Assembly (NCBI GenBank): GCA_000320545.1
Contig: ADNK01002732.1
Span: 1-60,713 of the forward strand
Direction of reading: 5' to 3'
Length of the DNA: 60,713 nt
DNA from: Bigelowiella natans CCMP2755
Taxonomy: Eukaryota; Protista; Cercozoa
Positions 28,560 to 59,900 of the stretch are shown here, piece by piece. A program made the translations under genes and the position numbers. Position 1 is the stretch's first letter. Each line of letters begins with the position of its first letter. The notes under the pieces are model-generated. The model did not search any database. It worked only from the letters and a program-made list of their open reading frames with translations, and had not been told where the DNA came from.

Positions 28560-31535
28560 TGCATTGCGCAACGCACTACTGCATTTCAATGTGAATCGTC
28601 ATTTGGAATCCATGTGACTACCAGTTGAATGTGCACGTCTAGACGTGCTAGCGTGCTTCGCGTGTGTCGCATGCATCTTCACATTGCATGGCCATGTGCA
28701 ACATCATCTGAGCTTGCTGAATCGTTTGTGCATGCATGTTTGCGCAGCTAGTCTTGCAAGTGCAATGAACGTGATACCGCACACACTTCTAGACTTGCAC
28801 GTGCAAGCGCTGGAGCGCACCAGCGCACATTGTGAGTGCCTTCAAGTGAGCAACGTGCGTGCACTCATCCTAGCATTGCTGGCTCCCATGCACGTCGTGT
28901 CAAACTAGCATTGCTAGCTAGCTAGGTTGTGCAGGCAGCTAGTGATCCGACGTGACAATGAAGGGTCACGCAACAGCACTGGAGCAACAAGCTGCTCGAT
29001 GCAAAACCACGAGGAAGTGAGTTGCGAAAATGACCTTGTGTTGTTCAACCAGTTTTCGAGTTCCGAAAAAAATGAGAATCCTGATCGAACAAAGATCCAC
29101 TGCCCCCACTAGCCCACTGTGTGACCACCAAACCACAAAACGTTCGATTCGAAACCTGAGACGAAAAAAAAAACAAGAAGGCCACAGCATCGCCGTGCAG
29201 CACTGTGTTCAAAACACGTGCAACGCCCAAGCCTCAACGTCAGCAAGCTCGAGTGGCGCAGGGCAAGCTTGGAGTTCAACAACGACCCCCTCACACTGCG
29301 CAATGACAGCCAGGCAGCTCCACCTTTGCTGAACGAAGGTCAGGAGGGCGGGGGATTTCCGCAGAATTTGCACCAACCACCAAGCTGAGTTGAGGAGCTC
29401 CCGTCCCACGTGCTAGCGTGGTGTGCGCATCCACACTGCATCCTGGTGCTGCAAGTTCTTCGCTGGCTGCGGGCACAGCTAGGTGGATGGGCGTGAGTCG
29501 AAGCAAGCGAGAACGAGAGGAGCCAACGCACCTGCAGTGCCACACAGCCAGACCAGTGGACAGCAAGGCACAAGGATTGTTTCGTTCGCCCATTCATCCG
29601 TTCAATGAGGCGAACAAAGAACACGTGACATCCAGGGGAACAAGCAACAACGGTGAGCAGAGAGATTGGGAATGCCTCCAACTTGCACTCCTGGTGGTGG
29701 CAAGTAGCAAGGTGAACCAAATGTCGAAACGTTGAAACATTGCTGGCAACTTGGAAGACGCTGCGTGGCCCACCGCACCGGGCAAAAAACACAAAGAACG
29801 TGTGTGGTTGAATTCATGTGTGTCGCACAAACATTCTGTGTTTTCACAAACACGTGATCGTGACTTGCGTTCTCACGGTGATCACGAACACGTGCACACC
29901 AGGTCACGTGTGATGAAGAACGTGTGAACAGTGCCACACGTGCTGGCATGTTCGCACGTGTGTGCGCTGCACAGCCCGTTCAGAGCTGCAGAACGCGTCT
30001 CAATGAGTGAGCGGACAATGTGCCCCAGCAGACTTTTTGAACGAGTGCAGTTCTGGAGTTGCAACGAACAATGAACTTGACGATGGACCAATCTCGTGAA
30101 CAGTGAGAACGATGATGAAAAACCACGTTTCCAAAGTGTGACAAGACACTTGCAGTGTGCGAAGTGCAGTGCCTCGAATTGGCTTCAATGAGGACTGAAA
30201 ACTGTGCCTCGAACCAACTTCGTTTGGTGGGCTGGTGAGAACCAACCAGTGAAACAATGAAAAACAATGAAACAATGACGACAAACTGCACTTCCAAAAC
30301 GTTGCAAGACGTGAACAATGAACAATGATGATGAACTGCACTTCCAAATGTGGCGCTCAGTTTGCACGCCACGGCCGGACAGGCAGAGCGACGTCCATTG
30401 TGTGCGTGACCCACGACACACGACGTCCTGACGAGCGCGACACAAAACGTTGCAAGACACTTGCAGTGTGCGAAACGCAGTGCCTCGAACTGGCTCAAGT
30501 GAGACAGACCAACTGGAGAACCAGAAGGACCACACTTTCAAAACGGAACGAATGAACGAATTTGACGAAGACTGCACTTCCAAAACACGGCATGACGTTT
30601 GCAAGGTGCGAAACGCAGTGCCTCGAGCTGAGTTCAGCGAGGTCTGAAAACTTGTGCACGACCTGGACGACGCCATGGCAGTGCTGCAGCACTCGCAGCT
30701 GACGTGTTGGCTCATGCACGATGTGGATGCTGCTCCAGCCTGGACAAACATCGCTTCCTTGCCCTTTCCACGTTCAACAAGCAGCGCTTGACAGCTCTGC
30801 CAACTCTCCTGTCCACCAACTAGCTTCGAGCCTGAGGGCACGCCAAGTGGAACTTTGACCTCGTGGGAACCATCGCTGTCTTCGAACGCCAACCTGTCAA
30901 AGTGGTTGAGCGAACCCAGGGCGGACCAAACTTTGCACAACATTGCATCTCGAAGCACAACAGTGTGGGCACACTGCAACAGTGGGTGACGAAGATCCTC
31001 CACAGCGCCCAAGCCACACATGCAACAACAATGAACAATGAACAATGATGATGAACTGCACTTCCAAAATGTTGCAAGACATTTGCAGAGTGCGAAACGC
31101 AGTGCCTCGAACCAACTTTGGTGAGGGCAATGACTGGTGAACTAGCAGATTTTTTGAATGAAGCTGAGCAAGCTGCATGTCATTGTGAGACAATGTGACT
31201 GGCAGCAATGTGGCGAAGGCGCAAGGTGTCAACTCTGATCAGGAACTTCCTGAACGCAACATCCACCCGACGATCCACGTTGGGATCATCCGAAGGAGCA
31301 CCCAGCAAGACTCTGGTCTTGACAGAGTCAGGAGCATCAAAGAATGAGGAACAGGTAGGAGAATCCGGGCCCAGAGCCACTCTCATGCTCGAGAAAAGTG
31401 TGTTCCTCTCAGCATTCAAGTGAGCACAATGATGGATGAGGTGGTTGACACTTTGAACAACTTCAGCATCACAAAGAGGACAGACTGAGGAAGAGGGGGG
31501 CAGATTGTGGATCTTGGCCCTGTGTTCTTCAGTTT
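28560..31535. repeat. TpA-depleted degenerate repeat/TE block
   Basis: Internal repeated modules, decayed ORFs and only 7 TA dinucleotides in 28981-31530. Confidence 0.8.
30130..31115. repeat. Dispersed ~60-bp module ACTGCACTTCCAAAAyGTTGCAAGAC...TGCGAAACGCAGTGCCTCGAAC, about 5-6 partial copies
   Basis: Copies near 30131-30180, 30286-30310, 30336-30348, 30445-30492, 30571-30626 and 31056-31112, several preceded by (AACAATG)n. Confidence 0.8.
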
Positions 31536-31575
31536 CGTAAGTGCAACTGTCGTCGTCGTCGTCGTCGTCGTCGTT

Positions 31576-36741: not shown

Positions 36742-38013
36742 AACTAAGCAAAGTTTTGATAAGCCTTGTCTCTGAAGTTGCTCTTACACAAATTGGGGTT
36801 GATTTTGCGATACCACTCACTTAGATCATCTTGGCCCCGTCTAAAGATTTGCGAATTTCGAAAGCGACAACCAAAGAATTTCATCATTGCACGTCAAATA
36901 GCTGAAAGGGGTAGAGGAACAGCATCAAAGGCAACGGTAGCATCCAGCCGGAAAAAGCACTTTAAATGACCAAGTGTTCATTTCTTTTATTTGTTCACTG
37001 GTGTAGCAACTTGTTGCTTCAATTTAACGGCATCTTCTTTCTTGGTAGTGCAGATGCACGCAGTGAAACACAACCACGCTGTGTTCGTAGGAATGATGTT
37101 GTGCAAACACTTCACGTGGACCACACTTTGCCGCGTTGTGTCTACATGGAGTTGATGTCATCTCAAAATCTCAATGCGACTTTTTGGCACATAGCAAAAC
37201 ACCACGCGCACCAAGTAGACACCAAGTCAGGCGAGACGTTGCGCATGCATTCTTGCAAATCTTCACGAAGTGAACAATTCACATCAATTCAGTGTGGCTC
37301 TTTGTGCATCGCGCAACGTTGTCACAACTGGGTGAAACGCGGGAATTCCACGGTTTCGCATGTTTCCTGCAAGAACTGAAGCAATGCAGCGGGACTGCAC
37401 GATTTGTGTGCAATGAAAAACACGTTTTGGCTTGCAGGTAGAGAAAAAAAAACTCAATTTTCAAGTGTGCTGCAAGTCAATTTGTTTGTGACAAAAAGGC
37501 CTGAAAAAAAAGCGCAAAATTTCGAAGTGACTGAACCTAAAATTTCGCAGCTTTCTCATTTTCGTCATGCCTGGTGCTCCCGGCTGTCTGTCATGATGGT
37601 CGTGTGCTCAAGCGTGATGCTTTCAGGTTCACTTTCTGATCGTGCCAGCGTGCGTGCAGATTGCACCGAAATCATCAGAATTTTCTGCAATTGGCTCACA
37701 GACGCGCTGCTCGTCAATGCTTGTTGTTGCACGTTGATGTGATCAAAGCTTTTGAAAACAAAACACTGAAACCCTGATCATGAAAACACATTGTGAGCTT
37801 GAGCATGCATGCTGAAACAAGCTCCCAAGAGGACATCACCGCTCGCACGCGGGTCTTTTGACTTTTGCGCGCGCGTTTCACTTTGCTGCAACTAGCTCAG
37901 TTGAACACATCACATCACGCCATTTTTGGATTGAAAAGGCAACATTTTCCCCCAACATCATTTCGCCAACTTGTGCTGCAAAAGTTCCCTTTTGCAACAC
38001 AACATCTTCCATG

Positions 38014-38150
38014 TCGCACTGGCCCAAGCGGGGCCAAAATGCCAAACTCACCAACCACTTTCGCACTGGCCCAAGCGGGGCCAAAATGCCAAACTTGCTG
38101 ACCACTTTCGCACTGGCCCAAGCGGGGCCAAAATGCCAAACTTGCCAACT
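38014..38150. repeat. 47-bp tandem repeat x3 with GGCCCAAGCGGGGCC hairpin-like core
   Basis: Units start at 38014, 38061 and 38108. Confidence 0.95.
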
Positions 38151-38451
38151 CATTTTGTCCCCCCAGCATGCATCTGACACACTGCCACTGAAACTAAACC
38201 AGAACAAAACTGCATCACAAATGCAAGCACACGCTTGGTGGTCATGACCGACCACATTTTCGGCCTTTTTTGGCTCTTCCAGAACACTCACGCAATTCGC
38301 CTGCTTGTGGTGCCCACGGCTCGGGTGAAGCAGTGCGGTGCCTGCACGTGTCCCCCACTCCAGCACTGCCCGAATGGCTGCAGACGTCTGGTTCGCCTGG
38401 TCACAACGAGTTGCAGTGCTGCCTTTGCGTGGCAGTCAGCAGTGTCGGCGA

Positions 38452-38745
38452 TGAACAATGAACAATGAATGAATGAATGAATGAAGCATTGATCAAATTT
38501 GCATGCGCGAGAACCACATGGGAGACAAGCGTGTGCGTGCTAGCGTGTGACAGAGCCTCAACAACAGTCTACAACTGAACCTTTCTCGTGTGCGAGCAAT
38601 GAACAATGAACAATGAAAAAAGCGTTGATCAAATCTGCATGCGCCAGAACAATGAACAATGAACAATGAAGAAAGCGTTGATCAAAACTACATGCGCCAG
38701 AACCACATGGGAGACAGGCCAGAACCATCAACAATGAACAACTGT
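38452..38745. repeat. Three related modules (AACAATG)n...AGCRTTGATCAAA..CATGCGC.AGAACCACATGGGAGAC
   Basis: Copies at ~38452-38530, ~38598-38650 and ~38650-38720. Confidence 0.85.
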
Positions 38746-39132
38746 GTTGTTTTGTGTGTTGTGCTGCTTCTGCAACAACACAATGAACGGACGTTACTCT
38801 CGGGTTCTTGTGCGGTGTTGAGACGACGACTTGGTGAAATCACGAATTTGTGTTCAAATTGCACTGCATCTCTCCTATCGTCAAACCATTCAGTACTCGT
38901 ACCACCCTCCTCCCCCCTCCTCCGGAAGAAGAAAGAAAACATTCGAAAATTCGTTCAACCAACCTTCGAGAGGACTTAAGCTATAACGATCATCAAATCC
39001 GTTCTACTTTAGCATCAACATTTGTCTTCAATCAACAAAGAAATTTCAACCTCATTCCTCACATTTCCACAAACCTGGAAAAACTCGGAACAACGTCGTT
39101 TAAGGGCAATAACTCTCTCAAGAGGATTCAAA

Positions 39133-40115
39133 ATGTCCACCACAACATTAAAGTTTTTCAGCCTTGTTTTGGCTTTTTCCATAGCTTCCGCTGCTCATTC
39201 AACGAGGGTGCATCCAACGAGGGCGACAACTCAGCACATAGTTGGGCTTCTCAAGCCACATTTCAGAAAAAGTATGATGATACCGATTTCGAGACCAGTA
39301 GTACCGTTGACGAGAAGTAAAGCATGGGATTTGAAAGAGGGAATAGGCATGTTAGAAAGCCTTAAAAGCGACATTTTGGCGAAAAATAACATTGTAGACA
39401 GATATCGTAACATCATTGAAACAGGTTGCACAAGTAAACTGACTGAGAAACATCTTCATGACGGTTATAAGATACTTGATGTGCGTCCAAACTGCGAAGT
39501 CAATGACATTTATCCAAGAGGAAGTGTTCATGCAGAGTTTTCTTCATCATACAATAAAGATGGATCAAAATCATTGCCCATCCCCAATTTGGATTTCATT
39601 GAAAAAGTAGAAGAGATAGGTGTTTCTAGAGAGGACAGAATATTAGTGGCATGCGGAGATGGACCCCTCTCATTTATTGCATGTAAAAAACTTAGGGATG
39701 CAGGTACTACATATTCAATGCCAATACAAAATTGTTTCCACTTAGTTTATTCGGCAACCTCTCTGAGTCTACATCTACATTCATCTTAGGCTTTAATAAT
39801 GCTAAATGGTTAATTGGAGGGTTGGCAGGAGTACCAGAGCAAGTTTTGATAAACGATGGATATGAGGCTGGTGATGCCTCTAATGATGAGTATGCGAACC
39901 TTATTCGACGGAAAGCTCAAAGAGCCTTTCGTACAATAAACTGTGTTAAAAGTAGTCCTCGTAGGAGTGTGCCAGAATGCAGAGCATCGGGAGAGAAGGA
40001 TGCTAATGCAGAAGGGCATGAATTTATTGCAATGGAGTCCAATTTGGCAGGCTTTGTGGATAATGTTATCATACGCGCATTGTTGGATCAGATAAAGTCT
40101 GTTTCTGGATATTAG
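39133..40115 (+). CDS. Rhodanese-like (sulfurtransferase) protein with bipartite plastid leader; 2 exons
   Basis: Signal MSTTTLKFFSLVLAFSIASA plus transit-like region; ILDVRP...RGSVH...ILVACGDGPLS...KLRDAG|FNNAKWLIGGL. Intron ~39704-39790; active-site Cys retained. Confidence 0.88.
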
Positions 40116-41420
40116 ATCTCCCAATTAGCAACATTTGCGACACAGATTCACATGCAATTCAGAAAATGTACATACTTGCACTATGTGCCGGATAGCCGGT
40201 GCATTATTAAGTTGTGAAATCAGATGTAGCTAACATCACTCAGAAGATGCACAATTCAAATTGCGTTCGTTTTGATTTACATTGCTGTAATAAATTGGTT
40301 TCTTCTTTGTTTACATGCATTCTGCAATGCAACGCTACCGTCAATGCAATGTGGTAGCAAATCAAAGAGGTGGCTAGACGTGCGATGCAAGCAAAAAATG
40401 CAGCAAAGTGCGGCGGCGTCCATCTCAACCATGAAAATTCCTGGGTTTCTGTTCGCTTAGTTGTGGCGCAAATGAGCGCTGACAAAATGTTAAGTCCAAC
40501 GCATTGCAAAAACAAGAAGCTAACTAGCTAAATCTAGACATGTACCAGATGCACATTCAAACACGCTAGCACGTCTAGTTTGCTAAACATGCCAAAGCGC
40601 AGCACTGCTAGACAATGCTTGGAATGCAGCGCATCGCTGAGTCCACGCAGCAACTGCTAGACTGCGGAGACTGTCATGCTGCATGCTAGCATGGGACAGT
40701 GCATCAACAGCTAGCTCTAGAGCTACACGCGTCATTTGCTGTTGTTCATCATCACCATTTAGAAAGCTACAAAATGCACCAGTCTAGCTGTACGCTAGTA
40801 CGTGCAAGCACTGCAAGCACGCTAGCACGACACTCCAGCACTGCTAGACCGATGAGCGACATGCACCCAAGTTTGCGCTCTCAACTAGTCGACATCAGAG
40901 CAATGTAAATCCAAAGGGGTGATCATGCTAGCATGCATGCAGCACTGGCTAGCTAGCTAGCTAGGCCAGCTAGCCAGCCATACAAATCGCATTAGACACC
41001 CCGAAAGTAAGCAACACATCTAGACATGGACAACGTACATGCTAGCATGGGTAAGTAAACTCGTTATCAGCTTACATGCGTACGAAAGTAAGTAAGATTA
41101 GGATGGGATCCATTATCATTTTGTCCCACTGTATTTAGCACATTTTGTTTGTATGAAGATCATTGTAAGATTTTGAATTAGTTTCTCATATGGTAATTAT
41201 CTTACGACGACATTAAAAAAAATTTACAAAATCTGGAAATAGATCTATGAGATGATTAACATTTAAATATGACCTTGCGTGTGTGCACGTAAATTATAAT
41301 AGCACATAGCACATAGCCACATCACTAACTAATAATTTAATGCACAAAATACACAAACCGATGATGTCTCAGAACAATTTGGTGTTAACTGGGAAGTTCA
41401 ACTACCACCTCCTCTCGCCA

Positions 41421-41511
41421 TCATTGCAACACTTGCGTGACGTCTTTCCCATTACGATTTCTCATCATTTGCATCGCTTCAATGTAATCTTTGATCCTAT
41501 GATATATATTG

Positions 41512-41542
<31 letters not shown>

Positions 41543-41803
41543 TGCTGTTGTCATTAGAGATAAATGGGGTGCTAATTATAAATGGGGTGCTAATTTATAG
41601 TATCAATTCATTACGATACCGATATTCAGAGATCTCAACATTGAGAAGGAATTCCCCAAGGTCCAAGGAGCTATTATTTTCCCAAAACCATGAAATTAAT
41701 CATTGGTATGCAAACACACAGCCGATGGAAAAAATCAAAATTAATCATCGCTAAATTTTTGAGAGAAGCATGTGAGTCAATCAAGTAGTCACTATTCTAT
41801 ACA

Positions 41804-41844
<41 letters not shown>

Positions 41845-43388
41845 GTGTGTGTGTGTGTGTGTATTACGAGACGGTATGTGGTGAGATGGAAACAATCTGG
41901 GACTCCAAATGCATAAATATCGTCACCAAATAATACACCTGCATGCAGTAGTTTCATAATTTGTAGCAGCAGCAATAGTTGTAGTAATAGTAGTAGTAGT
42001 AACAGTAGTGAAGAAGAAGAGGAAGAGGAGGAGGAGGAGAGCGGGGGAATGCTAAAATAAATCACCTTGATACTCTATAGCATCCCGAATATCAGATCAT
42101 TATTAACTTACTATCAAATATTTTCTTGCTGCTGTATTTCTATCCCTCCTCCCTACTACCCCCCTCCCCCCATTTCCATTTTAGGTACAAGTACAATACA
42201 GAATATTCGTGTGTAAGTCCTTGAAGAGTATTAATAAGAATCGTATAATTTAGTGTAGAGAGACATTGTTGTCGGCAAACAAGCAACCCAAATACTACCA
42301 CTGCTACTACTACTACTACTACTACTACTACCACTACCAACCTGATATTCAAATCCAGCTGTAGCGACGAGGACTGCGTATGCAATGAGCTCTTTTATCG
42401 AAAGAAAGCCCCAAAACGCATGTCTCATCCAATGGTTTGAGATAAATGCAATCGGAAGTCCTGCTGCTGCAAGAGATGAGCACACTTGAGGCACTTCTCT
42501 CATAGCTACAATTTCTATAGCATGTAGAACTGCCATCCGAGAAGGCGGCGGAGGACACCTACCAGAAGAAGGAGAAGAAGAAAGAAAATGAGGAGGATTA
42601 AAAAGAAGATGATAATATATGATGTGGAAGATTAGGATTAGAAGATGCTGATACTGATAATATATATATATGCATGCAATTATTCTACCATTTATTCCGT
42701 CGTTGTTGTTGTCGATGTTTTTGCATCAAGATCAGCAATTTAGGGAGAACCTCCTTCGCTTGCTCAACATCTAAATGAAGTAAACCACCACCATCTCCTC
42801 CTCCTCCTCCTCCTCCTCCTCCTCCTCCTCTTTGAGCTGCACCATCATCGCCAACACAATCTCCAATGAAAGAGCCACTAGCATCTCCCTTCTTCTTCTT
42901 CTTGTGTTCTTCTTCGCCATTATTATGTCGTTGAATGGGTTCTTTAGAGCTTGTCCCCGTTGTTGAGGGTGAAGTAGATGTGATAACTCTATTAGTAGTA
43001 GTAGTATCATTTATACTTTCACCAGAAGTAGATGTTATATACACTAAGCATAAGCTTAAGAAAACCCAGCGAAGACTTGGATCTTCTTCTTCTTTTTCCA
43101 CATCATAATAAAAGTTGTTTTTTGATTCCTCATCTGTCTTTTCTTCTTCAATTTTTGGTATTATGTGGTGATTATTGTAAGTATCACATTGACTATCTTC
43201 ATCGTTTTGATTGAGCGCTTGAAGTATCTCATAGACTCCATTTATAAGCCATTCATTGCGAGAGGACGATGCTGATGGAAGTAATCTCGAGTGCTGCCTT
43301 TTAATTTTTCTTGCTGTGGTTGTTGTTATTAACTCTCCAATGAGCTTCAGAACAGGCTTCATACTTTCCAACATCTCGGTAGGAAAAA

Positions 43389-43423
<35 letters not shown>

Positions 43424-45003
43424 ACTGCTGCTGCTGCAGGTGGTGGTGGTGGTGGTGGTGGTGTCGGAGTGTTGTTGGCATCATATTCAACGCTAGAAGA
43501 GGCTTTCTTCTTTTCCTTCTTCTTCGCAGCATTTCTACTACTACAAGTATGACGTAAGTCTCCAGAGGAGGAGGAGGAGGAGGAGGAGAGGGATCGTAGT
43601 CTGGTAATAGATGATGATGATAATGATTGGCCATCGGTAGTAGTAGTAGTACTAGTAGTAGTAGTAGTAGGAGTAGTAGTGGTAGTGGTAGTAGCACTTG
43701 TTGTAGTAGTTGTAGTAGTAGCTGCTGCTGCTGCTGCTGCTGCTACTGAAGCCAGGCTTTTACGATATATTGCAAGAGATTCAATATGAAGAATCACCAC
43801 CATATCTTTTCTCCCACTGACGTCGCTTATGTTATTTTTGTCGTCAATGTGGTGTATATTATCGTTATTATTTTCATTGCTTCTCTCATTAGCAATCGAA
43901 TTAATTTCAGACTCGTTGTTGTTGTTGTTGTTGTTGTTGTTAGTTCTGGAATGGCTCGTCGATGTATGTGAATATGATGACGATGGTGATGATGATCTCA
44001 TTATCGTAATTGGAGTATTACATTCATCATTAGCTTTCCCATCATATTGCTTAATACTAAGTGCCATCTTTAGAAATTGTAACGATTCTCGGGGAGAATA
44101 AGTAAAATGAAATGGCTTTTGCATCGAGAAGGAGTTTGGCGATGCATGATTAGGAGTAGTAGGAGGAGGAGGAGGAGGAGGAGGAGGAGGAGGAGGAGCA
44201 CTACCATCAGAAGGAAGAATAACAACTATGGGGCGACTAAATGGAGGTAGATCAAAAATACCAAATCGAATTGTAGTGAGAAGTAGGCTACATGGAGATA
44301 TGATCACTTTTGTGTTGTTGGTGCTCCTGCTGCAGTTGTTTCTTCCTATTTTGTTTGAGAATAATGACAACAAGTTCAACGGCGTCGTATATGGATCTAT
44401 TCCATCAACAAATCGTTGTGCATGTACCATGTATATACCGCTACTACTACCACTACTCCGACTGGTAGTAGTAGTAGTAGTTGTAGTAGTTGTAGTAGTA
44501 GTTGTAGTAGTAGTGCTGCTACTATGTAATATGTTCTTTTGTTGATCTTCTTCTTCTTCTTCTTCTTCTTCTTCTTCTGCGTGTTCCAAAGAAGAGGGAT
44601 AGGCTGGAGACTGTGATGATGATGATGATAATTTGGTGCTTTTGTTGTTTCTCTTTGCGTTGATCTTGTTGTGTTCCTTTTCCTCTGATGATGATGATGA
44701 TGCTACTGCTGCTGGTGGTGGTGGTATAGTTGATTGAGTATCCATGCTGTAACTACTATAACAACCATATGAAGGATAACGATGCCTACTAATGATTTTG
44801 TCGTTCCAGAATATCAAAGATAGGCTAAGACACCGAAATGCTAAGAGAGAGAGAGGGGGGGAGAGAGGGGGAGAGAGAGAAGAACAAGAACAGACATGAA
44901 AAGAAGATTAATATATAATCCATGAGAGTCGTAAATAAGGAATACACTGCCTATCAGATCCTGCAAGTACTACGACTACTACTGCTACAACTACAAATAC
45001 AAC

Positions 45004-45036
<33 letters not shown>

Positions 45037-45886
45037 TAGCACATTGCACTACCGCTACTACTACTACTACTACTACTACTACTATTACTATTACGATAAG
45101 TACCATGAGCTGTAATATGGAGAAACATATGAGCTTCATCATCATCAGCATTTACGTCAATCCACTTCTTATCGTGGACATTTGCTTCTCCAACGAGTGT
45201 TCTTCCTCCCCCAATAGTAGTAGTAGGAGACGAAGAAGAAGTAGAAGAAGAAGAAGAAGAAGAAGAAGGGGATGGGTGGTACCCAATGAATCTGTTCAAA
45301 ATCTTCTGGAAAATACGAATGCTGGTGCTGCTGCTGCTGAATCTCCCACTACTAGCAATGACTTCAGCCATTATTTCATCGTCATCATCATCATCATCAC
45401 CATATTGCTGCTTGTTTTCTTTTTTCCTATTTTCACTATTATCATCAATTTTGGTACTCGTAGCAGCAGCACCGGTACTACTACTAGTACTACTACTACT
45501 ACTACTATAGAAAGCACGGTAGTAGTTGTTGGAATAGTGATTTTGGAATGCCCCCGATGTGAATAATGATGAGATGTGCATTAAATGCCATACAATCAAC
45601 CGCCTAGAACTAGATTCTATTATTGTACAATTCAAAGAGTAGGAGGGGGAGAAGGGGGAGGAGGAGCGAAGGGAAGAGGAGATCAAGAAAAGGAATAATA
45701 GAATACAAAATGTTAATAATATTGCACTTCTCTTCAGAGAAAAGCATTCAAATGACGTCCTTCTCTTATTTAATTATTTTTTGGGTATTATATGTAGGAT
45801 CCATTAGGATGACGACTTTAGTACATGGTTTTAAAAAGAAATAGTAGTAAATGCTGTTAATCATAAAAAGCTTTGGTAGCGCACTC

Positions 45887-45924
<38 letters not shown>

Positions 45925-46002
45925 GCACACACATACTCCATTATTACCATGAGAGAGGTCTTCGGAAGTATGAAGATGTGATGTAAGAGTCTGCACCTAA
46001 TC

Positions 46003-46041
<39 letters not shown>

Positions 46042-48195
46042 TCCATTGCCATGTTTGAGAGAGAAAGAGAGAATAATGGCTGCAATGCTGCTGCTTTTGA
46101 TATTTCTTGCAATCAACACATAAAATTATTTGCACATTTGTTGTTGTTGTTGTTGTTGTTGTTGTCTTTCGTCGTTGTATCTCGAAGTATTGCTGCTTCT
46201 TCTTTGTAAATAATAACGTTAGCAATGAGCGTCTGTAAAATATCAGTCCTATCGATACTGCCTATGATCTCTTTTCCACCAAGAAGCAATTGACTCCAAA
46301 TATACCTAGAACAAATACCATGCAGTAGTAGTAGTAGTAGTAGTAGTAGTACACCGTGCAATGTGCAAGAATGATGGAAAAAAAAGGATTATTGTCATGC
46401 ATCACAACAGGCCATGCTGGTGAGGTAAAATGATGTATGATCTATTACGAGACACATGCTGCACAATAATAATGAGGAGGTGGTACTAATGTGTGCACCA
46501 TAACTAGAGTTATACATTATAATCATCATCATCACCATCATTATCATCATCATTGTCGTAAGAGAATCATATGATAATAATAACCTCCTCTCTCCCATTA
46601 GAATGAAGTCAGAATTCACAAATACAGAAACACACATAAACTTATCAAATTATTACCTGAATTTGGGAGTCGGAAGGTGTTCCACCAGAGGAAGATGTGG
46701 AGAAGGGGGGGGGGAGCCAGGAAGCGATGACGACGATGAGCAGGAGGATGAGAAAGAACAAGAAGAAGAAGAATGCTGATAATATTCACATCAAATCATG
46801 AATCAATTTGAGGAAGAGGGGGAAGAATGGTGGTGGTGGTGGTGGTGGTGAGATAAAATGTTGTGATACTACTACTACTACTACTAACACTACTACTAAC
46901 ACTACTTATACTATTGTGCGGATGCTGCTTGAAATAACAACACAAGAAGAGATTTGTTGTTGGTTGTGTGAAGAAAAGAAAGAAAGAACAACTTAGGTTA
47001 TCAATTAGCAGCATCATATAAAGAAGAAGAAGAAGAAGAAGAAGAAAGATAGAAATAATTCTCTCTTTACTCTCATCATCTATTCCTCTTCTTCTTGATA
47101 GGGATGCATGTTTTTGATGCATGTTTGTAACAAACCATCAACATGTTGAAATTGTAGTATCTCTCCCACGCATGATGAACCACGATATCCAACACGTTAT
47201 CTCGCTTGCTGTTGTTTCTTCTTCTTCTTCTTCCTCCTCCTCCTCTTCCTCCTCCTTGATGATTAACAAAGCTGCAGATTGTCTGAACTCCCAACGGTGT
47301 ACTTGCGACATCCACGAGTGTATCCAAAACTCTAATCATTAATTCAATGTTACAATCAAAGGTAAGATAATCGTCATACTCATCATCATCATAATTATCT
47401 TTACAGATTTCTTGGGAGGAATTGAAGAAAACTTTCCCCAGACGTTTTACTACTATAATCTTGATCTTGCCCTTTTTCTTCTTCTTCTTCTTCTTCTTCT
47501 TCTTCTTGTTGTTCTTCTTTGCTGCCAGTGATACTGTGTCTGTAATAGTTGTACAGTACAACAAAAGAGTAGTCGCATTTATTATCGGGTTCTCCTTGTA
47601 ATTATATTATTAATTCTGTCAGGACAACAACAAGCCTCTTATTATTATTACTATTACTATTATTATCATATTATATTTTATCTGGCAGGGGGACAACAAC
47701 ATGATAACATAATAGAAAGCTGTTCCAAAAAGCTTGGAAAATACAAAAAATTAATGATGTTGATTAATTATTAAAATGAACTACAAGCACCATCGTTACA
47801 GCTACAAACAAATACATCCATGTAATAGTATTTGTATCGTTATGTCATTATTATCATCATATATTCCTCATCAATAGTATTGGTATCGTTATGCCATTAT
47901 TACAATCATATATTCCTCATCACCACCATTACAATCGCCCTTATTATTATTATTATTATCATCACTATTATCATGATTTTCCAGCTCATTTACCCTTGCG
48001 GATGATGATCTGGTTGTTCAGCTTTTACTTGGAGATTTTTTGAAATGTGTACTAATATGTATTATGTAAATAATGTCAGATATGCATGAAGTGATGATTA
48101 ATGGAAACTGGATGATGATCACCACCGGTAGTAAGTAAGTAAATAAGTAGGTAAGTCTATTACTATTGTTATTGTTTCGTTAGGTGGTGAATAAG

Positions 48196-48229
<34 letters not shown>

Positions 48230-50086
48230 ATAAGTGGGCGGCGAGTGCTGATGGTGGTGATTGGACTACATACATTATTATAATAAATCCATACAGTGTT
48301 AAACCAAATACATACATTATAAATCATAATAATAATAATAAATTACAGTGGTGTGATTACAGCTACCAAGAATCTTGACAATTTTCCGGTGTCTACTTCC
48401 CAAAAGGACTTGTGACGTATTAGCATAACTTGCCATACTTCTTATCATATCGAATACAGAAATAACCAATCGCCTCAATTGCCTATTGTTCAAATCTAGC
48501 TGATGATCATTAAGGAGGATGGTTCTTTTGCTGCTGCTGCTCATCCTCCTCCCTCCTTTGCTGATGATTCTTCTTGTACATATTTGATGAAGAGATTTTC
48601 GAGGAATGGAAGGAGACTTGATTTTTCCTTCTTTCTTCATCATCATGGAACTATTACTCTCGTCGTGGAAAGTAGTAGTAGTGGGATGAGAATCATCATC
48701 GTCATCATCATCATCATCATCATCATCATCACCATCGTTAATGCAGCTACTACTATTGTCGTGGATTCTATCTTTCCGGTACAACTTACTGCTGCCACCA
48801 CTGCTGCTGCTTTTCCCTCCTACCACATTGTTATCCAATGTATTGCTTACTCTTCCTAACTCTCCTCCTCCTCCTCCTCCTCCTTCTCCTTCTGCCGCGG
48901 CTGCTGCTGCAGGTGATGGTGTTGTTGATGATGATGATACTTGCTCGCCTCCCGCCATGTTTGCAGCACTTAAAAAGAAGACTCTAAATAATATTTTCTC
49001 CGCAAGTAACAACACCGCAAATGCGAGACTAGTGCTCTTCTTCTTCTCAGATTCTTCATTTGTTTTCTTGTTGTTGATGCTCTTCTTCTTTTCAGATTCT
49101 TCATTTGTTTTCTTGTTGTTTTTGCTCTTCTTCTTCTCAGATTCTTCATTTGTTTTCTTGTTGTTGATGCTGCCGTTTTTTTGGTACTCACCATTATGAA
49201 TATCCCCCTCCTCATCAAATAGATCATGATAATGATGATGATGATGATGATAAAGCAATGGACGAGTGGAGAGAAATATCTCCCGCCCCTCTGCATGACT
49301 ACACAATCGATAGCAAATCTTCAGCAGCCCAATCAACTAAAAAGAAGGAGGACAAAGAAGAAGATTGGATTATCATCAGCAGCCCAATCAACTAAAAAGA
49401 AGGAGGGCAAAGAAGATTGGATTATCATAAACACAATACTGTTCAGATATTTCATCACCAAAAAGCTGATTTAGTAGGTTATTCTCTCATTCATCTTTTT
49501 TATATTGCAATCCCCTCCATCATCATCAAGTCATTACAGCATCATTATTATTTTAACGACCTATACCTGGTCAATCTTAAATTTCATCATTTTTTTGACA
49601 TTTATATATTACCTGCTCAATCTCAAATTTCGAATGTGGATCAATGGCAGTTCGCTGTTCCTGCTGCTGTCGAGCAATGGTGTGATTGCAATCATTCCTT
49701 CTATCTCGGGTTGAGATGAAGGCGGTGGTGGTGGTGGTGGTACCGGAAGATGATATCCCATTCTTAGTAGTATCATCATTCACATTAGCTGATAACGAGG
49801 AAATATTGTTGTCTATACTTTGTCGTATTATTCTTGTCGTAAGCAAGCTCAAATCGTAATTCGAGAGATCTGTGTGCAAACTAGGATGATGATGATGATC
49901 TTTGTCACCACCACCACCACCATGACTTTGTTGTTGTTGCTGATAATGATAATAATACTGCTGCTCCTGTTTTTGCTGGTGGTGGTGCTGGTCACATAAT
50001 CTCGATGATGGTGGTATCTTGCTGGCTTTGTCAGCTACAAACTCCAGGCATTTGTCCACAAGGCACTTAACCACTAATAGTAGGAA

Positions 50087-50121
<35 letters not shown>

Positions 50122-50208
50122 AGAGTGAATGCTGATGTAATTGGTGGACACAGCAGCAGCAGCAGCAGCAGCAGTTGTAGGAGTAGTAAAATAGAGTAGT
50201 AGTAGTAA

Positions 50209-50241
<33 letters not shown>

Positions 50242-50376
50242 AGAATACACCAAACAAACAATACGGAGTAGTAGCAAAGAGAGAAGCACATCACTATCCT
50301 TCATCTTCAACCAACAACAAGGGAGAGTCAATTGTCGGCTGCAGGCACACACTTTCGAGAAAAGGTTACATATATA

Positions 50377-50421
<45 letters not shown>

Positions 50422-52634
50422 TATATTATATATTGGAAATGTGATGACAGCTGCTTGCCAATAATACTATAATAGGTAGGTTTTCGTCGTATTTATTCGT
50501 AGGGTATTGAATCAGAATATTAAGCTGATGTTCAGCAAACATTGTGATATTATTACTATTATTATTATTTTTGTTCTTGTTGTTGTTATCATTCATTCAT
50601 TCATCCATTCATTCATCCATATCAATGTCATTGTAACTACTGCCGCCTTATTATTAACATATTTTTACTGTCGGAATGATCAATAACCCACCGCTACGTT
50701 TCGTGCTGGAGCAACAAGCATGATAATATCGTTCATATCTGAACAATTGTCTTTCTTTTTGCAGTTGTAACTCTTCTTTTCCTACTCGTTGTCTTCGTCG
50801 GTTATTGTCATCACCAACATACTTTTGTTCTTTTTCCTCTTTTTCTTCTTCTGATGAATTCTTTGATAACAACAATGAACTAGGAGCACAGCATATCTGT
50901 ACACAGAATGTCAACAACCTCTTGGTAATTGGTACTAGTGGAGGAGGAGATGCTTGTAGTACCGGTGGAGATTGTTGTTGTTGGTATTGTTGTTGTTGTT
51001 GTTCGTAGTGATGCTGCAGCAGCTGCTTTTTCTTTGCCTCTTTTGGAACGGTATTAAAAACACAAACACACACACTCACACTCACACTCACTCAAAATAG
51101 TAAGCATGCATCTTATGAGTGCTATCAATTATTATATCCAATTATTACTTACTGCTGGCTGGCGCAAATAGACAAAATACAACTTTAATCTTAGCTACTA
51201 CTCAGTAAAAGTTGTTCTTAGTGTAAGTGTCATTGTTATTGTCGGAATGTATATCACATACTTATTTTAAAAAACATTATAGTTATCATGTAGATTATAT
51301 TAAAAAATCCATCGTCGTGATCGTCGTCATTATCATTGGCAGTTGTTTTGTCCATAATTACAACGTTTAACTTTATTCTCGTTGTTATCACCATCTTCCA
51401 GGCGTCGTTGTTGTTTCCGTTGTTGCTCATCCATCATATGTTTTCTTTCTTCTGTAGTTGTAGTAGTAGTTGTAGTAGCAGTCCCCCGACACGATGATGA
51501 TGTTGAAGATACCATGTCCTTTGCAAATTTATAACAATCAAAAAATGATGATACCATGTCCTTTGCAAATTTATAACAATCAAACAAATGATGATACCAT
51601 GTCCTTTGCAAATTTATAACAATCAAACAAATGAATAACAATCAACAAATGACCATGATCATGATGCCATAAGTAGGATGATTTATAAGTTGTGTACAAT
51701 CATTTGCGTCGCATTTTCTAATATTTTCATTTAAGAATTTTAATAATAAGCATTGTTGTTGTACACATTATTGAAATGCGTTCATTATCTCACATCGTTT
51801 GTTATTTTGTTGTCGTTATCATTGTTGTCAAAATAGAGATTGTACTCCTACAACCTCGTATGAAAGCAATGAGGTAAGAAGACACGCATAATTCAGACAG
51901 GAGAGTGCTTCTATGCTTTCCCAGCTCCCAAAACTACAAATCCAACGATCACTTAGAGGAGGGAAACTACAAATCCGACGGCCATTTTGAAGAGGAAAAG
52001 CCTTGTTGGGAAGAAGACTAGAAGAAGAAGAAGAAGTAGCAGTAGTAGTAGTAGTAGTAGTAGTAGTCTTCTTGGCAGCTTTCTCGAGGTTCTTCATCAT
52101 GTGAGAAGGAGTAGCAGTAGAAAAGGGAGAAGGAGAAGAAGAAGGAGGAGGAGGAGGAGGAGGAGGAGGAGCTTCTTCCAATTCCTTTTTCTTCTGCCTA
52201 TTCCTTCTCCCATCGTTAGAAACAGTGGTAGTTGGAGATGTGTTACTAGTTGTATTGATGCCAACGTTACTACAGATATCCTCGCAGCGCTCTAAGAAGG
52301 ATTCAAGAGTTGATAGAAAATAATTATGATGAAGATCATCATTAACTTGATTCGTATCGTCCTCGCCAATACCGTCGTCATCATCATTATCATCATCACC
52401 ATCACCGCCACCACCAGCAACAGCAGTAGTAGTCATACAATCTCGAAATGCAAGTCGAATTGGTCCAAACACCATCCACCTAAAGCATGATGATGATGAT
52501 GATGATGATGAGGTTGATAATGATAAAAGAAGAAGAAGGAGAAGAAAAAGAAAGGTACAATATGTAATGTTACTACCGAAGGGTGCTAGTGCCCAATCAC
52601 TTATTTGTCAGAAGATAATTAGAAATATATATAA

Positions 52635-52671
<37 letters not shown>

Positions 52672-53888
52672 AGCTTCTTCTCCCATCATCATCATCATCA
52701 TCATCATCATCATAAATTCTTATTTACTTTTTGATCCATCTTGCCTTTGGATCAGTTAAAGCCAGCAGTTGACATGGTGCAATCACTGTGTGCTGCTCGA
52801 AAGGATATTCATTTCCTTTTAGTCTCAAATTTGCTGCTGCTGCTGATGGTGATGAGAACGATGAGGAAGAACAAACTCCTTGTTTGTATTCATAATCATT
52901 ATTTTTGTACATTTCTTCCTTCTCATCCGTAGCAATGACGACGTGTTCCATAGAAAGAACTTTCACTATCATCTTAACGATCTGATCATTATTTTGATTC
53001 AATAAATGAATATCTCCACATATTATATTTATATACGATGACAACAAAGTATTAATGATGATGACGATGATGATGATGATAGTGACTACGGATAATGAAT
53101 TATTAAATTTCTAACAACATAATCATTTGCCCTATTGATAAATAGGTGTACTATTAAGAATGAACACAATCATCATCGTAGGCTCAGATTGAAGGTGTGG
53201 TTCTACAACTGGTACCACTACTACTTATTTCTACCTTTCTAACGCATTCGTCTGAATAGGTAAGGAAATGCTTTGGTAACTTATGCAGCATATTTGTAAA
53301 GAACCGCATAACTCGTAGTTTCGAGCGTAGAAAGAATGAGCATTTCTTTTTTTCATCATCCCTCTCCTTGTTATTGCTATTGCTAAAATCTCTACTGTAC
53401 GAACTATGGTCAGCAGCAGCAGCAGCAGTAGCAGCAGTAGCAGAAAGTGTTGTTTCCCTACTTGTTATTGTCTTTTTGGTGCTACTATTTGATCCAAGCC
53501 TTCTTCCTTCTTTGCATCCTCCTCCTCCTCCTTCTTCTCCATCTTGGCTACTAATAATGGCCGCCTCCTTTGTTTTATCATTGACTTTTTGGGTTGCTTT
53601 AGTAGTAGGAGTAGTAGTAGCCTCGCCGTCGTCGGTATTTTTGTCATGATGATATCGTGTATCATCAGTAGTATTATTGTTGTTGTTGTTACTATTATTA
53701 TTGTAATAATAGTCATCATCGTTTCTTCCTTCCAATATTCTTCCGAAAACTTGTCTAAAAGAACCAACGATACGCCGCCTCCGCTTAGGATGATGACTTC
53801 GTCGATGACGATACCAATGATGACGATGATGATGATGATGCTGTTGCTCCTTCATCTGCTCATGTAATATTTGATGGCTTCTACAACT

Positions 53889-53919
<31 letters not shown>

Positions 53920-56900
53920 AGATTTGTTGGAGACGTTGTCTTTGAAATTACAATTGTTGTTGCTGATGCTATGGCCGTGGTGCTAGGATTTGAATCCTTT
54001 TCGTGAATTGTTTCCTTGGTAGTTTTCTTCACCTTCTTCTTCTGTGTCGTTGTCATCGTCATCATCTCCCTTCCAGCCTCTAAACAACCTTCTGGTACAA
54101 CGTACTCGCACCGCATGTCGGAGAAATCTTGACAGATATATTGCCCTATGTTCAGAAAGATATCCGCCGTCTGTACGCATGTATTATACAACAATAACAG
54201 CAATAACAACAAGAAGAAGAAAACAACAAGGAGTATTACATGTGACTTGACTAATGCAACGATAGCAATTTGATTATCTTCCTCCTCCTCTCCCTCCTCC
54301 TCCTCCTCCTTCTCCTCCTTCTCGTCATCACCATCATCATCATCATCAAACATGCACCACCAGCACCTGGACCGAAGCATCTGCAGCATCAAACAACTTC
54401 TTGTAGAAAGCAAGAGAAACAGCTCTCAGTTGATAATCACTGTCGCCTAGCAATCGCCTTAATGCTTTCAAAACGCCGTTCCAGTTTTGAAAACTCAATA
54501 GATCCCTAATTACCACCGTTAACAAGAAAATTATCTCATCATCATTATTTTAAAAAATGAAGAAATCCTTATCGTTTATATGAATATTATATCATCATCA
54601 TTATTTTAACAACTGAAGAAAATCTTAAAACTCCATCGATGCTAATGCTATGCTATATTATCATACTAATCAATACTACTGTAGCAAACATAAATTAGCC
54701 CAAGTATGATTTGGTGCAAGTTAATAATGATTTACAATATACTTGCAGTCTGCAAACACTCTTCCTCTCAGGGGCTTAACCACTGTTATATATACACTAG
54801 TACTCATGTCTCACCCCGGTGTAAACTTTCCTAGACTGGTAACAGCATCCCTTTTAACTGCAGCAGCATCATCTCTGTGTGTGACGTCGTAGAATTATTT
54901 TTCAGTGTTGATGGATTGGTGATAGAAACATGAGAAAATGAACCAAAGGAGGCAAGAAGACAACAAATGCTTCTGTGTAAATAGAAGTGAAGGAAATGAT
55001 GAAACTTACTATTTCATCTAATTGCCCAATCAAATCCTCCTTGTCCCACAATATGATGTACGAATAAAATGTAAAACATATCTGGTGATATTTAAGGTTG
55101 TAGTGTAAATTCAAAGTAGTAGCAGTATTTTACGTGTCTTTTCTTTCCATGATAATGTCAAGGAGCGGCTGGATATTTCCAAGAGGTGGTACGTCAGCAA
55201 ATGACTAAATGAATCATAACAACAACAACAAGAGGTGGTACGTCAGCAAATGACTAAATGAATCATAACAACAACAAGAAGAAGAATAAGGGACAACTTA
55301 CTGACTTTTTCCGACATAAGGTGTTGGTAAATCAGCAGCATCATAGATCATCATCACCACCACCATCACCATCATCATCGTCATCATCATCATCATCATC
55401 ACCTTTTTAAGTAGCAACAACAACAGAGTAAACTCCCAAGCATTAAATGTTGTTAAGCTTATTTTATTAGAATAAGTTATAAAGTGTTATTAAACCCATT
55501 AATTAATTCATTCTTACTAAGATATCGACTCCAGAATCAGCAGGATCATTCAGATATTGGTGATGATCATCATCGCCTTCATCGGGATGGTGATGGTATT
55601 CGTAATTCTCCCGTATTATCATGTTATTTTTCTGTGGGAGAGGGTTGGATGTAACAATATGCAAATATGAATAATAGAATTTATGAAGAATAGCAGATCC
55701 CAATGAATGATAACAACTGCGACGAAAGGAGGACTGCTCGATGATGGCAAACACACTCTTTGCAGCTACCAACTGCTGCTTCTTTTTTCTACTTTTGTAA
55801 GCAATTCTCATACCAGAGTCAAACAAAAGAAATGGAGTATATGATGAGTAGTAGTACTCTGTTTTGGCACTAGTAACAAGCGACGATCACACAGTGTTTT
55901 GATCAACACTTTGGATTTTAAAAAAGAGGGAGAATACGTAAATTTCGGGAAAAGAAGAGGTTTATTTATTTTATTTTTCCTACGACGTACACGGTTCTTC
56001 TGGGCCTGGTTCTTTCTCTTCGTGGCAATGGTACGACTACTACGTGGTTTTTTGCTACCCCCTATCACCATCCTTTCCGCTCCTAACAACTCTGTTTCAT
56101 GGTGTTGTTGCTCATAATGACAGTAATCATGACTTGGATCATCGTCATCATCTTTTACTACTACTCGGCCACTGGCGTGATGATGATGATTATGATAGCC
56201 CTGCTCGTGGTGGTAATGGTGGTGGTCGCAATATGCGGCTTTATCTTCTTCTTGTTCGGCGTGATCATCCTCCGCAGACGAAGAACGATGGGTTATCTTA
56301 GGTGTCCAGATTGGTGATCTAATCACCATGATTGTTACCGAGATGATTCAGATAAAAGAGAGTTGAAAACGATGAAACGAATGAGACCAGTAAGAGAGAT
56401 TGTTCATGAGAAGATATAATTTTTTAAAAAATGGGAGTTTTCACCATTTTCGTAATACACCACAATTTCATATTTTTATTATGCATAGTTCCTTCATATG
56501 CGTAGTATCATCATTCAATAATATCACGATTAAATATTGATGTAGTCAGTCCAACCCGATTTTGTCTTTATAACTGGGCCTAGCACTACCACCGAGTTGA
56601 TCGTTGCGTAAATCAGCAGGAAGGAATAACAATACAGAAAGTCAATGAGTCATATTTGCAATATTATCATCTATGGAAACATCATGCTTACGTACGTAGA
56701 ATTGAGAGAATCCAAATTAGAACAAGAAGAAGAATGATGATGCTGAAAGTCATCATGAAAGCCAGGTGAAGTAGTTGCTTGCTGCCGTGTTCGTTCGGTC
56801 AAATTCCTTGATGAAGTGTCTTGGTTCATAATTGATGCTGCAACGTTGCGAGATCTTAAGTGCCGGATGATCCTCCTTGCAAATAAAGAAATATTAACAC

Positions 56901-57770
56901 TACGGACTTTTAATAACAACAAATGAAAGCTCAAGATTCGCCACATTTCTGTTTGTATGCATATGAAGCTAGGGGGTGAATAATAATGCTTTGTAGTAGT
57001 TTTGCTACGAGCTACTATGTTTAGACCATTAGTCATGTTAGTTTCTGTTGAAGTTGTTTTTGTTATTGTTATGTTGTGAGATACCGTCTCGTAATTTTTC
57101 TCGCAAGCTTCTGTCGGATGCAAGTAAGAATATCATGTTTCAATTTGGTAAAAGCTTTGCTGCAAAAAATCCTGGCTGTATGGACTTTCGCCTCTTTTCT
57201 CAATCGAAAACTTTCATCGTCGTAGCCATCGTTCTCGTCATCATCATCATCATGGCCGTTGTATTTTTCATCATGATCATACTCTGCCCCCTCAGCTTCG
57301 ATAACTTTCCAGACTTTTTGCATCAAAGAACCAACAGAAGGGTTTTTGTCAAAGTTGATCTTGAAATGAGGGTCCAACCTGAGAGGAGAAACCATCAACA
57401 GCAACAGATTATATGTCTTCTTTATATCAGCTTGATGATGGCACTAAATGGAAACTTTCTCCTCTTATTTGGTGAGAATGATGGCAGTTGTTTGGTACTC
57501 TACCTAAGCTGATTGCAGATGGCACTAAGAGCTTCACATTTGCTCAAACCGGACGTCAGCTGGAGGTTTAACGCCGAACGCCGGACATGGCTCACAAGGG
57601 TCTCCACAATGTTGTCCTATTTTGTCCAATTAGTATATTAGTCTGAAGTAGGGTCACCTCAGAGCTCGTAACATCTACTGAAGATATCACATGCAATTCT
57701 ACACACAGCAGCAAACATGTTGCTCGATTGATAAATAGAAACCAAGCTCGGGCAATTCACGACATGCAAC
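41421..57770 (-). CDS. TBC1D32: Broad-minded (BROMI/TBC1D32) ciliary protein homolog, expanded by homopolymer insertions; exact start uncertain (~57610-57770)
   Basis: C-terminal exons HAIEIVAMREVPQVCSSLAAAGLPIAFISNHWMRHAFWGFLSIKELIAYAVLVATAGFEYQ|VYYLVTIFMHLESQI...|SLDLGEFLLNVEISEYR|IKDYIEAMQMM...LQ* match the recalled BROMI C-terminus. VKRDAVTSLGKFTPG|DLLSFQNWNGVLKALRRLLGDSD (~54370-54850) and N-terminal exons at 57100-57620 also fit. Confidence 0.85.
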
Positions 57771-58102
57771 ACGAAAATGGTCACAAGAACCTGTAGAGTC
57801 TGTTGTGGATATAGGTTGGTCGACATCTTCGTCCTCCTCAGAGGATTGGTATGGTTAGTATGTGTTGATCATCATCGGAAGGAGGAGGAGCTCGTCCGTT
57901 GTTGTCAGGTAGTTGTCGCAACTGCATAGGTAAGATTACTGTGTAGTCCTTAGTACGACAACCAAACATCATTGTCGCAACTTGTGAATCACACTCTTTC
58001 ATCATGTATTTACATCTAATTAAAATGAGTAGTCCAGTGCTCAAACAAACAAGAAGCACCGCACCCACGTAGGAATACATCACAACCAAGCTCATACGTG
58101 TA

Positions 58103-59900
58103 GCTTGACGACCTTTCCAATTCGCGAAATGCGAGCACAGCGTTCGTAGAAATACGAATGAGTTTCTTCAGCAAGGAGAATCGGGTAACAGGATAGGTTT
58201 CCTTGTTGAAAAAAAAATAGTTTCGGATGTGATTTACATGTAATTACAACAAACAGATCTTGCGATTGATATGGAAGGGCAACGTGGAAGAAATACGCAA
58301 TATTTTTGGCGAGATCAAATGGAAAGATGACACACAAAAGAGTGGCTTAGAGGCCAAGGCAATTCTAACAGCAGCGGAATGTGGCCAAGTTCCTATTCTT
58401 AGATACCTCTTTGAAGAAGTTAATTTGGGATCAACCATTAAGAGCAAAATTGCTACGAAGGCACTTAAGCTATCAACGGTATTTGCCCATATCAGAGTGG
58501 TAAAATATCTTGTGAAAGAGGCAAAGGCTAACATCGAAGCTAGGGATGGCTCAGGATACAACGCATTGTTAAATACCATTGAGTAGGTGCAAGACAATAA
58601 GAAATAATAGTAATGATAATGATGCTGATAATCTGTGGCGTGTGGATGTTTCTTAATAATGAGACAGATGCAGTTGTGATGGATGGTTTTTGGGAATAGA
58701 TGTTAGTCATTGTCGTCATTAATTTCCTCTATATATTAAAATGAAACATGTATTTCCATAACATTAGGTCCAACGGGCCACGGAATAGTCAGATGGAAAT
58801 CGTGCAGTTTCTCTGCGAGGCGAAGGCGAAAATAAATGCTCGCACAGATTATGGTCACACGGCGCTTATTTTGGCTTCACGGAGAAGCAAGCTGAATGTT
58901 GTACAGTACCTTCTTGAAAACTACTACGCAAAAGACGGTGGTTGTGGTGTCAATTCTCATGCTCAAGAATTTCTTGGACAGCGTGCAGATGGCCACACGG
59001 CATTATATTTTGCTATCCGAAACAAACATCTCAATGTTGTAAAACATCTTCTCAGATTCAGCGCTGATCCGAACGTTGTTGAGAACATGGCGATTCACAA
59101 TGAAGTCCCATTATTGGTATTGGCAGCCGGGGCTAGCACTGTAGAGATTGTGCGGGAACTTATAGATGCGAAGGCCAACATCAACACGCAAATCCTCAAA
59201 AATAGAGAAACGGTACTACTAAAAATGAAAACACTATCATCAGCACCGATCATCCCTTCAAAATGCCAACTCCAAAGGCAATGATGTCTCACGAAGATGC
59301 ACATCATCACCATCCTGTTCATGAATTTCAAAATGAATCATCTCATTATGTTCTTCCTGCATTTTTTGGTGTTGAAGGCTTTGCATGCTGCAGCTGAAGC
59401 TGGAAATTATTTGACTGCCAAGTGTCTCATAGAGTTTCGAGCTCTTGTAGATGTAAAGGTAGTAGCAGCATATTGTTTCAAGTTGTATGTTGTTAATTAA
59501 TCATCAACCGGTGCTGGTAGAATAAGAACGGGGCTACACCACAAGATCTCGCTGAAAAGTGCCACAACACGAGAATTGAAACCCTACTTAAGGTTGGTTT
59601 CTCACAATTCTCCAGTGTTCCAATTGCATCGTCGGATTTAATGTGATGTGTCAACAGCAACATTGCACGTGCAAACACGCCGAACTCTACTCAGGCTGAC
59701 ACAAAATGGTTTCTTTGCAACGCACATCACATCAGGATGAACATTTGCGGTTGCTCCGTGAAACTCTGGTTCTGGACATGCCAACTCTCCACATGCTACA
59801 CAAAAATGTTTTGGTCGCCGCCGGTGTTTCAGATGAAATGATGCTTGAAGAGGAATTTGACCCCGGAAACATGTTCTCTGATAGCGATGATGGGATGTGA
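58103..59900 (+). CDS. Ankyrin-repeat protein; multi-exon, 5' end unresolved (may begin ~57780)
   Basis: Ank repeats ILTAAECGQVPILRYL, GHTALILASRRSKLNVVQYLL, GHTALYFAIRNKHLNVVKHLL, ALHAAAEAGNYLTAKCLI and NKNGATPQDLA. Likely last exon 59736-59900 (DEHLRLL...SDSDDGM*). Confidence 0.85.

Follow-up and report, generated by a model that had tools for sequence, protein, structure and literature searches.

A short minisatellite in non-coding DNA of Bigelowiella natans raises the question of how tandem copies that are otherwise alike can come to differ by whole dinucleotides, CA in one and TG in the next, and what stood at these sites before the copies diverged. The array is part of the window analysed here, by which we mean the whole 60,713-nt stretch of contig ADNK01002732.1 (strain CCMP2755), probably the telomeric end of scaffold 77. 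It extends from 38014 to 38154 and comprises 2.9 head-to-tail copies of a 47-nt unit, with no strand assigned: unit 1 (38014-38060) carries CA at both variable sites (38049-50 and 38052-53), unit 2 (38061-38107) carries TG at both (38096-97 and 38099-100), and the last and partial unit 3 (38108-38154) combines TG (38143-44) with CA (38146-47). The 35-nt unit core, TCGCACTGGCCCAAGCGGGGCCAAAATGCCAAACT, occurs exactly three times in the whole window, with starts at 38014, 38061 and 38108 at a spacing of 47 nt, and none of 100 dinucleotide-preserving shuffles contained a match. Across unit positions 1-42 the copies are unlike only at positions 36-37 and 39-40, reading CAcCA, TGcTG and TGcCA; all six variable dinucleotides are either CA or TG, in register, and there is no other substitution in the 3 × 42 aligned positions. 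The first-pass annotation, which had located these dinucleotides at precisely the positions given above, described the units as otherwise identical. This holds for positions 1-42, but not for unit 3 from position 43 onward (38150, the array edge), where T takes the place of C and the tail reads ACTCATT instead of ACCACTT, such that the final base of the range originally drawn (38150) already differs. Its remark that the other CG sites are unchanged is borne out, as the CpGs at unit positions 2-3 and 16-17 are kept in all copies (6 of 6).

Nothing points to a function of this array, which matches no Pfam or Rfam family, Rfam returning only chance matches below threshold. A structural role was rejected, since each unit offers a 6-bp hairpin (TGGCCC/GGGCCA), yet the array folds no better than its shuffles (z = -0.53). 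A search of the protein database with the 162-aa open frame that spans the array recovered neither relatives nor the frame itself, and the transcripts recovered by exact look-ups of the neighbouring gene's product are two short contigs, both ending before the array. Within the window, no further copies of the unit were found at up to three mismatches, by short-word BLAST or by BLAST with purines and pyrimidines collapsed, and the unit pattern with each CA/TG step written as YR had no match in viral_contigs or metagenome_contigs.

An experimental precedent comes from B. natans itself. In mutation-accumulation lines of strain RCC623, TpA is converted to TpG or CpA in local regions, two integrated viral regions mutating about 1000 times faster than the remaining genome (Mettrop et al. 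2026, bioRxiv 10.64898/2026.01.13.699255). Of the 231 mutations in the hot regions, all but one (230) are A>G or T>C, and the text of this preprint places every one of these on TpA; they come about in situ while the cells grow clonally, in an integrated virus that is single-copy and transcriptionally silent (Mettrop et al. 2026). By our own count of Table S2, the NCLDV (giant-virus) region has 211 mutations, of which 206 fall on TpA and five do not (T>C three times at ATG and once at ATT, and C>T once), and the base following the mutated A in the 206 events is A in 67, T in 67, C in 52 and G in 20. At four TpA sites in the same table (369024/5, 431239/40, 460651/2 and 510984/5), one line carries T>C and another A>G, and these alternate-strand changes are the experimental counterpart of CA versus TG among the copies of the array. 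The authors proposed that an adenine deaminase is responsible, naming the ADAT2-like protein Bn78255 as a candidate, and reported 124 genomic clusters of 1-kb windows poor in TpA and rich in CpA+TpG (Mettrop et al. 2026). No mutation in Table S2 lies on scaffold 77, as is expected where almost no TpA is left. The gene lists of the preprint include scaffold-77 models numbered 1-4, far from the array (Mettrop et al. 2026), and the array locus is probably absent from the list of that study.

The surroundings of the array bear the same signature. The array sits within a 302-bp gap without any TpA, inside a TpA-erased domain, D2 (37217-38875, no strand assigned), which is delimited by TpA positions and contains in its 1.66 kb only 8 TpA compared with about 110 expected from base composition (observed/expected 0.07). 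In a 1-kb profile, TpA falls to 10 and 11 per kb at 37001-39000 from a background of about 90. The corresponding ratios in D2 are raised to 1.50 for CA and 1.88 for TG, and the GC content is 48% compared with 38% in the background. CpG is not depleted, with a frequency of 0.048, twice the background of 0.024, and an observed/expected ratio of 0.82, the background value being about 0.6. Both 1-kb windows that cover D2, starting at 37001 and 38001, pass the thresholds of the preprint (Rho_TA ≤ 0.43 and Rho_CA+TG ≥ 1.52), with TpA ratios of 0.14 and 0.18 and CA/TG ratios of 1.65 and 1.64, respectively; being only two, they miss its cluster rule of at least three consecutive windows, in a frame that may differ from the one used there for the scaffold. 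The requirement of three windows concerns cluster size, not the mechanism itself.

The composition of D2 can be compared with that of a second and larger erased domain, D1 (28941-31537, no strand assigned). The summed frequency of the four pyrimidine-purine steps TA, CA, TG and CG is 0.256 in D1, 0.262 in D2 and 0.256 in the background, a near-constancy to be expected if host-like DNA had undergone transitions only. CA and TG are equally frequent in D2 (175 and 172), without strand runs (runs z = +1.4), so that hits on the two strands look independent. Coordination along one strand was rejected on these grounds, as the order of CA and TG is also unclustered in D1 (z = +1.0), and a hand count of same-line mutation pairs within 1 kb in Table S2 (lines 1, 3 and 19) yielded 18 same-strand and 12 opposite-strand pairs, a difference without significance. 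Close to the array, D2 also holds a 53-nt tandem repeat (38594-38699, no strand assigned), which retains TA in one copy (CTACATG, TpA at 38689) and has TG in its sister (CTGCATG, 38636-37); this pair is a half-converted site.

From these observations, the array very likely lies in a domain in which the local, TpA-specific hypermutation of B. natans has run almost to completion. The pattern among the units and the regional erasure of TpA are read directly from the DNA, and from them we infer that D2 was a target of the process. The ancestral unit would have carried two TpA (...AAACT-TA-C-TA-ACC...), and tandem duplication to about three copies would have been followed by independent conversion of each TpA in each copy, a change on the plus strand (A>G) giving TG and a change on the minus strand (read as T>C) giving CA. 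Chemically, the adenine of 5'-TA-3' would most likely be deaminated to inosine, which would pair with C at the next replication; the enzyme is presumed, the putative ADAT2-like Bn78255 being the candidate of the preprint. The simplest history would require six conversions, or five if TG at the first site was inherited, or four if copy 3 is a recombinant.

The published counts allow this history to be put into numbers. With 206 mutations among 6169 TpA over 3132 generations, the rate amounts to 1.07 × 10^-5 per TpA per generation, at which 95% of TpA would be converted in 2.8 × 10^5 generations; at the ordinary rate of 3.46 × 10^-10, the remainder of the array would gain only 0.0125 substitutions over the same time, and none is observed. 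Published rates and a TA ancestor together predict full conversion of TpA and about 0.01 other changes, which is what the array displays, and the pattern is that of a process outpacing ordinary mutation about 30,000-fold. One detail of the second site concerns its context, CTAA, because its product CCAA, found in two of the three copies, would require deamination of an A that precedes G, a context rarer than any other in the published list (20 of 206); CCAA is possible, but not the favoured outcome. The earlier proposal of a TA ancestor, changed on alternate strands after duplication, gains support from the domain context, the organism, the CpG data and the rates. Since no copy or outgroup that keeps TA was retrieved, the TA state at the two columns is reconstructed rather than seen; it is highly probable, the residual doubt covering the missing outgroup, the assumptions of the model and mixed histories.

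The same two products would also arise from CG columns that decayed by deamination of 5-methylcytosine on either strand, independently in each copy, as CG>TG or CG>CA, and the window-wide observed/expected ratios of 0.70 for CpG, 1.29 for CA and 1.22 for TG, together with paralogue columns in D1 that show ACG, ATG and ACA states, agree with such a source. All six CpGs at the variable columns would, however, have had to decay while the six others of the array stayed intact, and this in a domain where CpG is twice as frequent as in the background and its observed/expected ratio is higher. Nor do the mutation-accumulation data reveal a raised mutability of CpG: outside the hot regions, CpG transitions account for 7 of 41 GC>AT changes, with about 5 expected when the CpG frequency of the window serves as proxy for the genome, and in the NCLDV hot region they account for 0 of 211 (Table S2). 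Starting from CG, the probability that six changes fill exactly two of the four CpG columns, and nothing else changes, is about 3 × 10^-8 with the measured rates and at most 1/924 even if only CpGs were mutable. A CG ancestor is consequently at least 900 times less likely than TA, and about 3 × 10^7 times less likely with measured rates, and decay of CpG appears a very improbable origin of the pattern.

Editing at the level of RNA would account for a preference for TpA in another way, if an ADAR-like enzyme had edited the double-stranded RNA transcribed from a mobile element, with reverse transcription fixing the changes before or during insertion. ADAR-type enzymes favour an A that follows U (UpA), a preference also discussed in the preprint, and reverse-transcriptase domains are enriched among the TpA-poor genes of the B. 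natans genome (Mettrop et al. 2026). Against this, the published mutations arose in place in a single-copy silent virus during clonal growth, no reverse transcriptase or other element features were found in D2, and the edge of D2 abuts the start of a host transcript instead of element termini, which leaves RNA editing with little credence. It is just as hard to credit that no special process is involved and that ordinary mutation, gene conversion or unequal crossing-over of diverged copies, or an assembly artefact produced the array. Other arrays of the window also vary at TA/TG, TA/CA and CG/CA sites, and minisatellites recombine readily and are easily misassembled. In this array, however, every difference is a double transition and all fall on two in-register pyrimidine-purine steps, the remainder of the 3 × 42 positions being unchanged; a direct change between CA and TG needs two adjacent substitutions each time, and the surrounding 1.66 kb shows the same chemistry. 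TpA-specific hypermutation of a TA ancestor is the reading followed below.

D1 extends the picture beyond the array. Its 2.6 kb contain 7 TpA, each with G as the next base and five of them within CTAG, and TpA counts in the 1-kb profile drop to 4 and 1 per kb at 29001-31000; with the windows starting at 29001, 30001 and 31001 it satisfies the three-window rule of the preprint. GC is raised to 48-52% in the erased domains. The older repeat families of D1, 61-94% identical, pair CG with TG/CA 18 times, CG with CG 17 times and CA with TG only 4 times, and exchange between CpG and TpG/CpA is thus common there, perhaps by decay of CpG or perhaps by a slow step from CpA/TpG to CpG; the direction of these columns could not be set without an outgroup. 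Both domains carry arrays on a GAACAATGAACAATGA motif (30090-31135 and 38449-38741), accompanied by GAATGAATGAATGAA in D2, and these arrays are the sole sequence similarity of D1 to D2. Neither domain has a recognisable viral or transposon identity. No Pfam family was detected for 20 open frames, 14 of which belong to D1 and D2 and the others to the rest of the window, and the searches of viral and metagenome contigs and for protein relatives described above gave no match; heavy mutation could have wiped any signal.

The window is rich in microsatellites, and a third TpA-poor domain occupies a subtelomeric position just inside the telomere repeats (59590-60530), with 10 TpA compared with 63 expected, observed/expected ratios of 1.68 for CA and 1.91 for TG, and two CTAG among its surviving TpA. 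At the end of the window (60529-60713), (TTAGGG)11 passes directly into about 30 copies of TAGG, which would make a telomere-like end whose distal 4-nt repeat is unusual, unless the assembly is at fault here. Outside the erased domains (1-28000 and 41000-59000), tandem repeats also vary between TA and TG or TA and CA, for example at 2478, 3743, 10899, 15245, 16013 and 16413, with a per-site frequency about that of CG/CA sites (16028, 16038 and 16397).

Among the few TpA that survive in D1 and D2, the palindrome CTAG is prominent. Seven of the 15 are CTAG, a tetranucleotide that makes up 2.5% of TpA in the background, and 14 of the 15 have C before or G after them. At background density 9.5 CTAG would be expected and 7 are present, compared with 8 other TpA where about 367 would be expected (Fisher p = 4 × 10^-8). 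Survival amounts to 0.4% where neither strand reads TAG, 5% where one strand does, and 74% for CTAG. That an A before G is merely a poor substrate fits these survival classes, but is probably not a full explanation of CTAG, as CCAA is as common as CTGA and the 20 TAG-type events among the 206 published ones are too many for near-complete resistance. CpG, on the other hand, reaches 0.048-0.054 in the erased domains compared with 0.024 in the background, mainly by a gain of ACGT, GCGC, ACGC/GCGT, GCGA/TCGC and TCGA, and hardly of CCGN or NCGG. Together with the three T>C at ATG in Table S2, this gain suggests a slow second step from CpA/TpG to CpG, provided that the ancestral composition was host-like. 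Old domains may be gaining CpG along the path TA > CA/TG > CG, mostly where the step is not preceded by C or followed by G. Neither CTAG nor CpG is mentioned in the preprint (Mettrop et al. 2026).

Downstream of the array lies a rhodanese-like host gene (JGI Bigna1 81157) on the plus strand, at 38896-40287, with one 83-nt intron (39705-39787). The transcript contig L001 encodes 81157 exactly and matches the window at 100% over 38896-39704 (809 nt) and 39788-40287 (500 nt); the open frame 39133-39789 shares a 90%-identity cluster with jgi/Bigna1/81157, the next relative being from B. longifila at 77% identity. These matches identify the window as nuclear DNA of B. natans. The 3' edge of D2 (38875) is only about 20 nt away from the 5' end of this transcript (38896), such that the hypermutated state ends where host transcription begins. 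Tentatively, and with rather less than even confidence, it may be proposed that the specificity of the mutator is wider than the preprint reports, with CTAG nearly immune, a drift from TA through CA/TG to CG, and saturation of a 1.7-kb stretch, devoid of viral features, beside a host transcript. If this were true, the position of the edge would point to chromatin or transcription, and not foreignness, as what sets the boundary.

The underlying mechanism is already described in B. natans, and the array locus is one more target of it, apparently a non-viral one. What the array adds is a small natural experiment, in which each of the paralogous copies, alike in all else, settled the same two TpA independently of the others. 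Taken on its sequence alone, it would record that the process acted after duplication, on either strand, and changed six of six TpA and nothing else. It corroborates the published mutation-accumulation result and indicates that small domains without viral features are affected as well, while the contexts of residual TpA in saturated domains could help to define the sequence preference of the enzyme.

Set beside the hypermutation described by Mettrop et al. (2026), the case agrees in organism, in the dinucleotide targeted and in its two strand-dependent products, in the signature of TpA depletion with CpA+TpG enrichment in clustered 1-kb windows, and in that the same site is changed on either strand in independent lineages. 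It differs in that D2 measures only 1.66 kb and is saturated, not in progress, that it has no recognisable viral or transposon gene and ends beside an expressed host gene, and that the evidence comes from paralogous copies, whereas theirs came from experimental lines. Decay of 5-methylcytosine at CpG likewise leaves TpG or CpA according to the strand, but its source is CG, whereas in the present domains CpG is retained or enriched and the mutation-accumulation data of B. natans show no raised CpG rate. Hyper-editing by ADAR and mutation by APOBEC3 share the deaminase-type, clustered transitions with a neighbour preference (for ADAR, U before the edited A) and a proposed role in defence against foreign nucleic acid; they act, however, on RNA or single-stranded cDNA, and not on resident chromosomal DNA as would be the case here, with an enzyme that is only a candidate. 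Repeat-induced point mutation (RIP) of Neurospora and other fungi is a further parallel, being a dinucleotide-specific, transition-only, regional hypermutation which degrades selected DNA and by which repeat copies end up unlike at the target dinucleotide. Its direction is the opposite, since RIP converts CpA to TpA, such that TpA accumulates and GC falls, whereas in B. natans TpA is destroyed and GC goes up; moreover, RIP is triggered by duplication in the premeiotic sexual phase, while the main published target in B. natans is single-copy and mutates during clonal growth.
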